64,000 nucleotides of DNA from Sminthopsis crassicaudata (taxonomy: Eukaryota), in contig NC_133622.1 in assembly GCF_048593235.1 (NCBI RefSeq), forward strand, positions 106,020,001-106,084,000, in the 5' to 3' direction. The translations under genes were made by a program, and so were the position numbers. The notes under the pieces are model-generated. The model worked only from the letters and a program-made list of their open reading frames with translations, was not told where the DNA came from and did no database searches. Below, piece after piece: positions 40,346 through 42,445 of the stretch. The stretch's first letter is position 1; every line of letters starts with the position of its first letter.

Positions 40346-40656
40346 CTCATTCACTCATTAGCAATACTGCTACTCAACTGGAAATGGTGCAAAAATGTGG
40401 AAGAAGAATTTTACACTCTGTATTCTCTGATGTTTGTTCATAGTTCAGAGGAAAGGGGAATAGATCAAAGTTTTAGGATCTAACTCAGGGCACCTAAAGA
40501 GAATCAAGTTGATTATTAGGATGGTCCCACTGTAAGCTTCTATCATTCTACCCTACAATTCTCAGATCGACTTAACAGCTCCATCTGAGAAAAAAAGAAA
40601 GAAAGAAAGAAAATTTCAGTATATATTTCTTAATAAAAACCCATCACCTAGAAAGT
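40346..40656 (-). repeat. Inverted duplication, copy A (in the CFAP97 3' UTR)
   Basis: Its reverse complement aligns to 41783-41819 plus 42168-42445. Confidence 0.93.
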
Positions 40657-41136
40657 GCTGCAATTATAAATTCAAGGCATAAATAAATCCTGAAGCACGC
40701 AGAAAAATAGAATAAGTAAATTTAGGAGCTAAGCTCATGGTTTAAAGTTTTAATGGGAAAAAATGAGAACTAAATTAGCTAAAAATCCTGGATCCAAAGT
40801 ATTGCAATACCACCATTCTGTCAGCATGACAATGAGTTCTGTGAATACGGTGAGAAAATTTACATGTATACTACCATCCCTGTATTAAATATATGTGTAT
40901 GTATACGTATACACATCTCAGATAAATATATCCACACAGGAAACACTGATTTGACATGAAACTGTCCTTTGGAAAGTAAATATTGCATCAAGTTACAATA
41001 AATTAAAATACAATGCTGTATACTTTAATCACTTAAAATAGGATTACAGACTTTTGCACAGAGAATTACAGTAATCTACAAGAGCACTTCAATAGAAATC
41101 TGAATAACAATGTTCAAAATAAGTTTTTTTTTTTCC

Positions 41137-41264
41137 TTATAACCAAGCAGTACGAACATTAGGGGGTTTAGGTCTCAGTAGAGGGCCACTGGATGCATCA
41201 GAAAGTGATCTTTCACTCTTCCGGCTGAGTGCACTTGTAGCACTAGAGGACCTGGAAGCTCCTC
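41137..41264 (-). CDS. CFAP97: CFAP97 last coding exon
   Basis: Acceptor ttattatcag|GA; [14 protein letters not shown]...[12 protein letters not shown]. Coding exons sum to 1087+269+151+128 = 1635 nt = 544 aa + stop. Confidence 0.93.
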
Positions 41265-41782
41265 CTGATAATAAACAAACAAGCATGGAAAATTAGCCAA
41301 TCATTTAAAATTTGAGGTTCTTTTTATCTTTCATTTTAAAACATTTTTTAAGATTAAAAAAATCTAAAATTAGAAAAATCAATTTTTTTTCTTTTTCTCC
41401 AGGAGGATACCAATTTTTTTGGAGTTGAGAGCAATTTGGAGGGACAAAAGGATCTTAATAACTCTAATAGGGTGGGGAAAACCCCTATAGATTTAGAATC
41501 AGTCAAGAAATATGGGTTCTAAGTGCTGGTATTGCCACTTATTGGCTGTAAACATTTATTCTCTCTGGGCTACAGTTTTTTTCATCTATAAAAGGAAAAG
41601 AGATGTACTAGACACAAGAACATTAGCATCCCCTTCCAACTCTAATGGCTAGGTTCCCAAGAACCATTTACTAAACATAGACAACACCTATTATACTATT
41701 CTAGGCATAGGGAAATGAAAAGACAATCTCTGCTCTCATTAATTTATCACCTAACAGGAAATAATTTTTAAAACATATTTAA

Positions 41783-42445
41783 ACTTTTCTAGGTGATGGT
41801 TTTTATTAAGAAACATATATATTGAGATTCAGGCCAATTCCAACAGACTTGTGATGGACAGAACCATCTCAATCCACAAAGAGGACTGTGGAGATTGAAT
41901 GTGGATCACAACATAGTATTTTCACCTTTTTTGTTATTTGTTTGCTTTTATTTATTTTCTTTTTTTTTTTCCCTTTTTGATCTGAATGTTCTTGTGCAGC
42001 ATGATAAATGTGGAAATATGTATAGAACATGTTTAATATATATAGGATTACTTGCTGTCTAAGGAAAGGGGGAAGGGGAAGGGAAAGAGAGGGAGAAAAA
42101 TTTAGAATATAAGAGTTTTACAAGGGTGAATTTTTGAAAATAAAAAGCTATTATTAAAAAAAAAAAAAAACATATACTGAAATTTTCTTTTTTTTTTCCC
42201 CCTCAGATGGAGCTATTAAGTTGGCCTGAGAATTGTATGGTAGAATGATAGAAGTTTACAGAGGGACCCTCCTAATAAATCAACTTGATTCTCTTTAGGT
42301 GCCTTGAGTTAGATCTTAAAACTTGATCTATTCCCCCTTCCTCTCAATTGTGAACAAATATCAGAGAGTAGAGAATATAAAATTCTTCTTCCACATTTTT
42401 GCACTATTTCCAATTGAGTAGCAATACTGCTAATGAGTGATTGAG
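41783..42445 (+). repeat. Inverted duplication, copy B (in the last CFAP97 intron), split by an L1
   Basis: Aligns to the reverse complement of 40346-40656 on both sides of the L1 at 41820-42167. Confidence 0.92.
41820..42167 (+). mobile_element. L1 3' fragment inserted into duplication copy B
   Basis: L1 3' UTR and poly-A. TSD aaacatata at 41811-41819 and 42168-42176. Confidence 0.88.

Follow-up and report, generated by a model that had tools for sequence, protein, structure and literature searches.

A locus-specific inverted duplication across the last intron and 3′ UTR of CFAP97 in a marsupial, with the potential to form a long duplex in the pre-mRNA

To our knowledge, almost all of the known long endogenous double-stranded RNAs (dsRNAs) of mammals are inverted copies of abundant SINEs. 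Pairs of inverted Alu elements (IRAlu) and the inverted SINEs of the mouse place two arms of ~300 nt in opposite orientation in one transcript, with ~85-90% complementarity between them; most known ADAR substrates belong to this size class. In a second type of system an exon pairs with the adjoining intron, as with the editing-site complementary sequence (ECS) of the GluR-B/GRIA2 Q/R and R/G sites, where the duplex exists only before splicing; these duplexes are short, site-selective, conserved and edited. Editing of exon-intron duplexes competes kinetically with splicing (PMC1920255, PMC5291252, PMC5991522). Non-repetitive intramolecular dsRNAs, i.e. long predicted duplexes of unique sequence within a gene, have been catalogued in human using dsRNAscan, with set medians of 75-144 bp (PMC11838218). 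Template switching, in which a nearby stretch is copied as its reverse complement, instantly yields a perfect inverted repeat that can be folded in RNA and has been proposed as the origin of new hairpins; the events described are mostly tens of bases long and have short loops (PMC8794818, PMC10710096).

Here, an inverted pair of arms at the 3′ end of CFAP97 in the marsupial Sminthopsis crassicaudata is compared with these systems. All coordinates are those of the window, the whole stretch of 64,000 nucleotides that was analysed. At a probability of roughly 0.7, the pair is read as an incidental, non-repeat, local inverted duplication, intron-to-UTR, which has dsRNA-forming potential and is a slowly decaying scar.

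The inverted duplication and its setting in CFAP97

Arm A is the reverse complement of the two parts of arm B taken together, with 87-90% identity over ~315 bp (Table 1). An earlier note on this DNA had described an inverted duplication of ~310 bp here, and it was recovered by the repeat search, by BLASTN and by global alignment. The four inverted pairs found by the repeat search are collinear (40346-40641 against 42445-41798). BLASTN aligned 40346-40631 with 42445-42165 (86.8% over 287 columns, E 1e-94) and 40612-40654 with 41829-41786 (88.9% over 45 columns, E 1e-9), and the distal part of arm B was also found by nhmmer (E 3.6e-6). For the global alignment the insert 41820-42176, consisting of an L1 and one copy of its target-site duplication (TSD), was taken out first. 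Arm A and the reverse complement of arm B then gave 275 matches, 32 mismatches and 17 gap columns, which is 89.6% identity without gaps. The gaps represent ~5-6 indel events, few and ordinary, and fall mostly in an A-rich tract, located inside arm A at 40584-40618. The homology continues for ~40 nt beyond this tract in both copies, as the earlier note had also observed.

The spacer between the arms (40657-41782) has the length previously given, 1126 nt, and contains the splice acceptor, with the exon beginning at 41264, and the stop codon, as had been stated; the 42 codons previously counted in it, however, are 41 full codons and one split codon.

Table 1 Coordinates of the CFAP97 exons, the duplicated arms and the L1 insertion in the window.
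Feature	Position	Strand	Details
Penultimate CFAP97 exon	44602-44752	minus	tblastn 98% to reference residues 442-491; donor read
Last CFAP97 intron (3337 nt)	41265-44601	minus	GT 44601-44600, AG 41266-41265; tblastn map and RNA contig ends
Terminal exon, coding part	41137-41264	minus	split codon, 41 codons, stop 41139-41137
Arm A	40343-40660	minus	CFAP97 3′ UTR, 480-800 nt 3′ of the stop
Arm B, main part	42177-42448	minus	last intron, 910-1185 nt 5′ of the acceptor
Arm B, distal part	41779-41819	minus	set apart by the L1 insertion
Inverted arm pair	40346-40476/42315-42445		87%; repeat search
Inverted arm pair	40468-40514/42278-42324		96%; repeat search
Inverted arm pair	40513-40608/42183-42278		83%; repeat search
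Inverted arm pair	40620-40641/41798-41819		95%; repeat search
L1 3′ end, 5′-truncated	41820-42167	plus	poly(A) at ~42156-42167; inside arm B
Left TSD, AAACATATA	41811-41819		sequence read directly; identical to 42168-42176
Right TSD, AAACATATA	42168-42176		sequence read directly

The L1 insert within arm B has at least six further matches in the 64-kb window (BLASTN). One of these matches (16199-15923) lies directly 3′ of an ORF2p-like fragment on the minus strand (16683-16898), which matched residues 1074-1144 of human L1 ORF2p with an E value of 4e-20 in a PDB sequence search; Pfam gave no match on two short L1 ORF2 fragments. Other genomic copies of the L1 extend 5′ of position 41826 in DNA contigs. 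The insert has a truncated 5′ end, a poly(A) tract, a TSD of 9 bp and homology to L1 3′ ends, and the TSD and poly(A), together with the L1 matches and the copies that reach further 5′, identify it as a 5′-truncated L1 3′ end, inserted later than the duplication. The earlier proposal that an L1 with its own TSD split the intronic copy at a later date is therefore upheld by the paired AAACATATA sequences, the poly(A) and the ORF2p-adjacent copy. Decayed 3′ ends of the same L1 family are also present in the window at 15923-16898 (minus strand), 6180-6839, 25738-25863, 30290-30602, 10622-11032 and 54678-54811.

The host gene is the marsupial CFAP97, encoded on the minus strand. A stop-free stretch at 50338-50700 (minus strand) contains the Pfam domain Hmw_CFAP97 (PF13879; E 3e-14), which scores above the cut-off. 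When the exons were searched singly, the best matches for the first coding exon were the CFAP97 proteins of Trichosurus vulpecula (85%), Petaurus breviceps (80%) and Macrotis lagotis (76%), ahead of those of eutherians at ~60%, which marks the genome as that of a marsupial. A tblastn search with the Trichosurus protein placed four exons of the coding sequence on the minus strand (60175-59075, 50643-50362, 44752-44603 and 41220-41140). The gene is thus identified by its domain, by its similarity to annotated CFAP97 proteins and by the four mapped exons.

The terminal peptide (41262-41140) is identical to residues 493-533 of the T. vulpecula CFAP97 at 40 of 41 positions, to the protein of the bilby, M. 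lagotis, at all 41 and to that of Alligator sinensis at 28 of 41. As the match to the terminal exon reaches the alligator, the exon enclosed by the arms is ancient, and this rules out the arms being the terminal repeats of a transposon that carried the exon. The Pfam domain, the exon map and the terminal peptide agree in placing arm B in the last intron of CFAP97 and arm A in its 3′ UTR, where the earlier note had put them.

Two further features were seen in the last intron. The segment 41500-41650, between the acceptor and arm B, looks MIR-like by eye. A weak SNORD64-like match at 42825-42884, on the plus strand and hence opposite to CFAP97, scores 26.7 bits where the gathering score is 40 (E 0.045) and is probably due to chance.

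Transcription, predicted folding and the case for a functional element

Contigs of four public runs were aligned to positions 38400-44300 at a likeness of at least 80%. A 3025-nt RNA contig from run X13 fits the window from 39233 to 41264 and is then unlike it for ~1 kb, and a 3747-nt RNA contig from run X7 fits from 38400 to 41264 and then runs on, unlike the window. That both contigs cease to fit exactly at the predicted acceptor shows that these are RNA runs, that the acceptor is used and that the mature 3′ UTR includes arm A. Both contigs pass through arm A unbroken, and the 3′ UTR portion of the terminal exon reaches 39233 or further, and in X7 passes 38400. X7 also contains intron contigs, including one over arm B (42205-42572), whose depth is about a third of that of the exon, and both arms therefore coexist in the RNA of that sample. 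Over arm B, this contig and a DNA contig of run X4 (42205-44300) have 0-1 differences. The RNA contigs gave no sign of an alternative terminal exon or joint.

The contigs of all runs, both DNA and RNA, break at 39231-39232, within a C11A8 homopolymer (39222-39240); as the break is common to DNA and RNA it is attributed to the homopolymer and not to a poly(A) site, although it might be taken for the end of a transcript. The X7 RNA extends at least 850 nt beyond 38400, i.e. a longer 3′ UTR isoform.

The 2.2-kb pre-mRNA corresponding to 42500-40300 on the minus strand was folded. In the minimum free energy (MFE) structure (-733 kcal/mol), 286 of the 743 pairs join arm A to arm B, 252 of them in the main part and 34 in the distal part, and the longest helices without a break measure 35, 33, 27 and 26 bp. 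Cofolding of the two main arms gave -391 kcal/mol, or a net value of ~-269 after the self-folds had been subtracted. The predicted duplex is ~290 bp long with a loop of 1.1-1.5 kb, and the acceptor and the stop codon are located in the loop, outside the helix. The pre-mRNA thus carries an exonic and an intronic arm that are predicted to be able to pair, in the manner of an ECS. Edited human dsRNAs have medians of 297 bp in length, 31 contiguous bp, -410 kcal/mol, 85% of bases paired and a loop of ~2 kb (PMC11838218), and the length, longest helix and cofolding energy of the predicted CFAP97 duplex are within the range of that set. Because transcription reaches arm A 0.6-0.9 kb after the acceptor, the duplex would form only on molecules in which the last intron is unspliced; the earlier note had confined it to these molecules, in keeping with both the gene anatomy and the predicted fold.

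Between the arms there are 24 transitions which, in the sense of the RNA, give 12 G·U and 12 A·C oppositions (binomial p = 1, a comparison of low power). An even division carries no hint of a wobble bias and so gives no sign of selection on pairing, and at the sequence level the decay between the arms looks neutral. The X7 contigs have no differences from the genome on either arm, although RNA contigs are blind to editing of a minority of molecules. Over 2032 nt the X13 contig departs from the genome twice, with T>A at 40412 and T>C at 40567; both positions are in arm A, and the other ~1720 nt have no difference. The change at 40567 is A>G in the RNA and restores the base of arm B, the A being opposite a C in the predicted duplex. 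An A opposite a C is a context favoured by ADARs. As the change is accompanied by a transversion, makes up 100% of a single contig, is absent in X7 and comes from a run with no matched DNA, a difference between haplotypes is at least as likely, and the X13 differences leave a small opening for real editing.

Divergence from a second organism was also calculated. Run X19 (organism B) differs from the window at 48 of 1744 positions in the UTR (38400-40410; 2.75%) and at 133 of 1925 in the intron (41474-44298; 6.9%). The 3′ UTR, including the start of arm A, has thus changed ~2.5 times more slowly than the intron, which suggests constraint on the long 3′ UTR. One X19 contig (41474-41855) spans the L1 junction and X19 also has depth over arm B, indicating that the L1, and probably both arms, predate the split from organism B. 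The Kimura two-parameter (K2P) distance between the arms is ~0.114 in the global alignment, and the duplication itself would be ~1.6-2.3 times as old as that split.

These observations bear on the proposal, made in the earlier note, that the pair acts as a regulatory fold-back switch for splicing, terminal-exon choice and UTR editing, or, more generally, as a selected element that couples splicing of the last CFAP97 intron, nuclear retention and A-to-I editing of the 3′ UTR. The duplex matches the edited human dsRNAs in size and quality (PMC11838218), both arms occur in RNA with the intron signal noted above for X7, and exon-intron duplexes are known to tie the level of editing to the rate of splicing (PMC5291252, PMC1920255). 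Organism B appears to retain arm B and the L1 junction at an intron divergence of ~7%, but persistence over that much neutral divergence is expected of neutral DNA as well, and the L1 insertion in arm B has itself been tolerated. The one A>G change, at an A·C mismatch in X13, is set against its companion transversion and the complete agreement of X7 with the genome, and G·U oppositions are not in excess over A·C. An alternative terminal exon was not found among the RNA contigs, and fewer than 1% of the approximately half a million non-repetitive dsRNAs predicted in human are edited (PMC11838218). On this balance the switch is unsupported and a selected element is unlikely. Slightly less probable still is its most specific form, a lineage-specific element derived from a template-switch duplication, which would recruit ADARs or other dsRNA-binding proteins and slow the removal of the last intron, or hold the excised intron on the 3′ UTR, and so tune the export of CFAP97 mRNA and the editing of its UTR, with 40567 as the first edited site.

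Copy number and origin of the duplication

Copy number was assessed from the summed depth of X4, a DNA run whose sample and study are other than those of the probable assembly source and of which 93% of the 3.2 Gb of contigs was read. The depths were 48.7, 53.8 and 61.7 in the bins of arm A and 51.8 and 75.4 in those of arm B, the single contigs that span the arms having depths of 48.4 and 47.3, respectively. By contrast, the two bins of the L1 insert reached 1.33 million and 0.80 million. Approximately 10,000 of the contigs on the L1 bins are less than 90% alike, showing that the method detects diverged copies, and as the arms differ by only 10-13%, the sister copies of a common burst would have been caught. 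In the 64-kb window, neither BLASTN nor nhmmer, run at maximum sensitivity with a profile of both arms, found a third copy beyond A-rich low complexity. In Rfam, the only matches were two sub-threshold snoRNA-like ones, lying beyond the arms or at their edge. A metagenome scan with a 24-mer common to both arms gave 0 matches, a result that is uninformative.

The duplicated unit is therefore locus-specific at a likeness of at least 80%, family members less than 80% alike, or a family limited from the start to two copies, being of a kind that would escape the depth method. A dispersed-repeat origin, an outcome that by the earlier note's own account would have told against its description of the unit as locus-specific, non-SINE and unlike any recognised repeat, is rejected at 80% identity or more by the single-copy depth and by the lack of a third copy in the window, and the description holds to the same degree. 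The arms also differ from an IR-SINE-type pair as they have no multi-copy family, no poly(A) end of their own and no TSD of their own.

Two insertions, in opposite orientation, of a very low-copy or extinct mobile element, for example a rare non-autonomous element with an A-rich tract, would be a comparably doubtful explanation to that of a selected element. The unit does contain such a tract (40584-40618) and the depth measurement sees only those copies that are at least 80% alike. Nevertheless, with arms 87-90% alike, the siblings of a burst should align at 80% and the excess depth is approximately zero, while the profile search detected no diverged copy in 64 kb. Neither TSDs nor terminal inverted repeats were found at the ends of the arms, nor was a tRNA-like head found in them (ARAGORN), and it would be a striking coincidence for a family with almost no copies to have landed twice within 1.1 kb. 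An assembly artefact, in the form of a falsely inverted or duplicated segment, is extremely improbable, as each arm, together with the unique sequence beside it, is covered by X4 contigs from an independent sample (39233-41854 and 42205-44300) with 0-1 differences, or 0-2 when the X7 and X13 RNA is included, and 32 positions distinguish one arm from the other.

A local inverted duplication is the reading we prefer. There are two copies only, and these are near each other on one chromosome and in opposite orientation. A segment of ~315 bp at the 3′ end of CFAP97 would have been copied once, inverted, to a place ~1.1 kb away, probably by a template switch in replication or by templated repair of a break and not by two insertions of a mobile element. 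The copies would have come to lie in the last intron and in the 3′ UTR, on either side of the ancient terminal coding exon, and have since presumably drifted, under what appears to be neutral decay, to ~10% mismatch, the L1 3′ end entering the intronic copy later. In a pre-mRNA that carries both arms, an imperfect duplex of ~290 bp could form in vivo if the last intron remains once the polymerase has passed arm A. Such a duplex would be a plausible incidental substrate for ADARs or dsRNA-binding proteins, until splicing put an end to the intramolecular pairing.

Comparison with known systems

The CFAP97 pair is a clean natural case of a predicted unique-sequence duplex of ~290 bp whose arms lie in an intron and in the 3′ UTR. 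It may be of use in studying how local inverted duplications seed RNA structures, and whether a structure that is present before splicing influences editing, the kinetics of splicing or retention at all. The pair is best read as an example of raw material, in the form of a mutational scar that has structural potential, and is no demonstrated regulator.

The CFAP97 arms have the arm length, opposite orientation and complementarity of IRAlu and the inverted SINEs of the mouse, and likewise share one transcript. Unlike these, they are outside any dispersed family at a likeness of at least 80%, and as dispersal is the defining property of inverted SINE pairs they are not assigned to that class. 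In addition, only one of the two arms is retained in the mature mRNA and so, unlike an inverted SINE pair, CFAP97 would provide no intramolecular dsRNA in the cytoplasm. The human non-repetitive dsRNAs resemble the CFAP97 duplex in being long predicted pairings of unique sequence within a gene; the latter is about twice the length of their medians, is found in a marsupial and extends across the boundary of an intron and a 3′ UTR. Template-switch hairpins share with it the reverse-complement copying of a nearby stretch, whereas the CFAP97 unit is much longer, at ~315 bp with a 1.1-kb spacer, and we infer the mechanism in this case.

The arrangement most like that of CFAP97 is the exon-intron pairing of GluR-B/GRIA2, in which the duplex is likewise confined to the time before splicing. 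The CFAP97 duplex differs from it in being ~290 bp long and non-coding, in its loop of 1.1-1.5 kb, in having the intronic arm 5′ of the exon and in being known here by prediction. By analogy, the CFAP97 pair may work like the known exon-intron ADAR substrates; its length and its position astride the last intron and the 3′ UTR are somewhat unusual.
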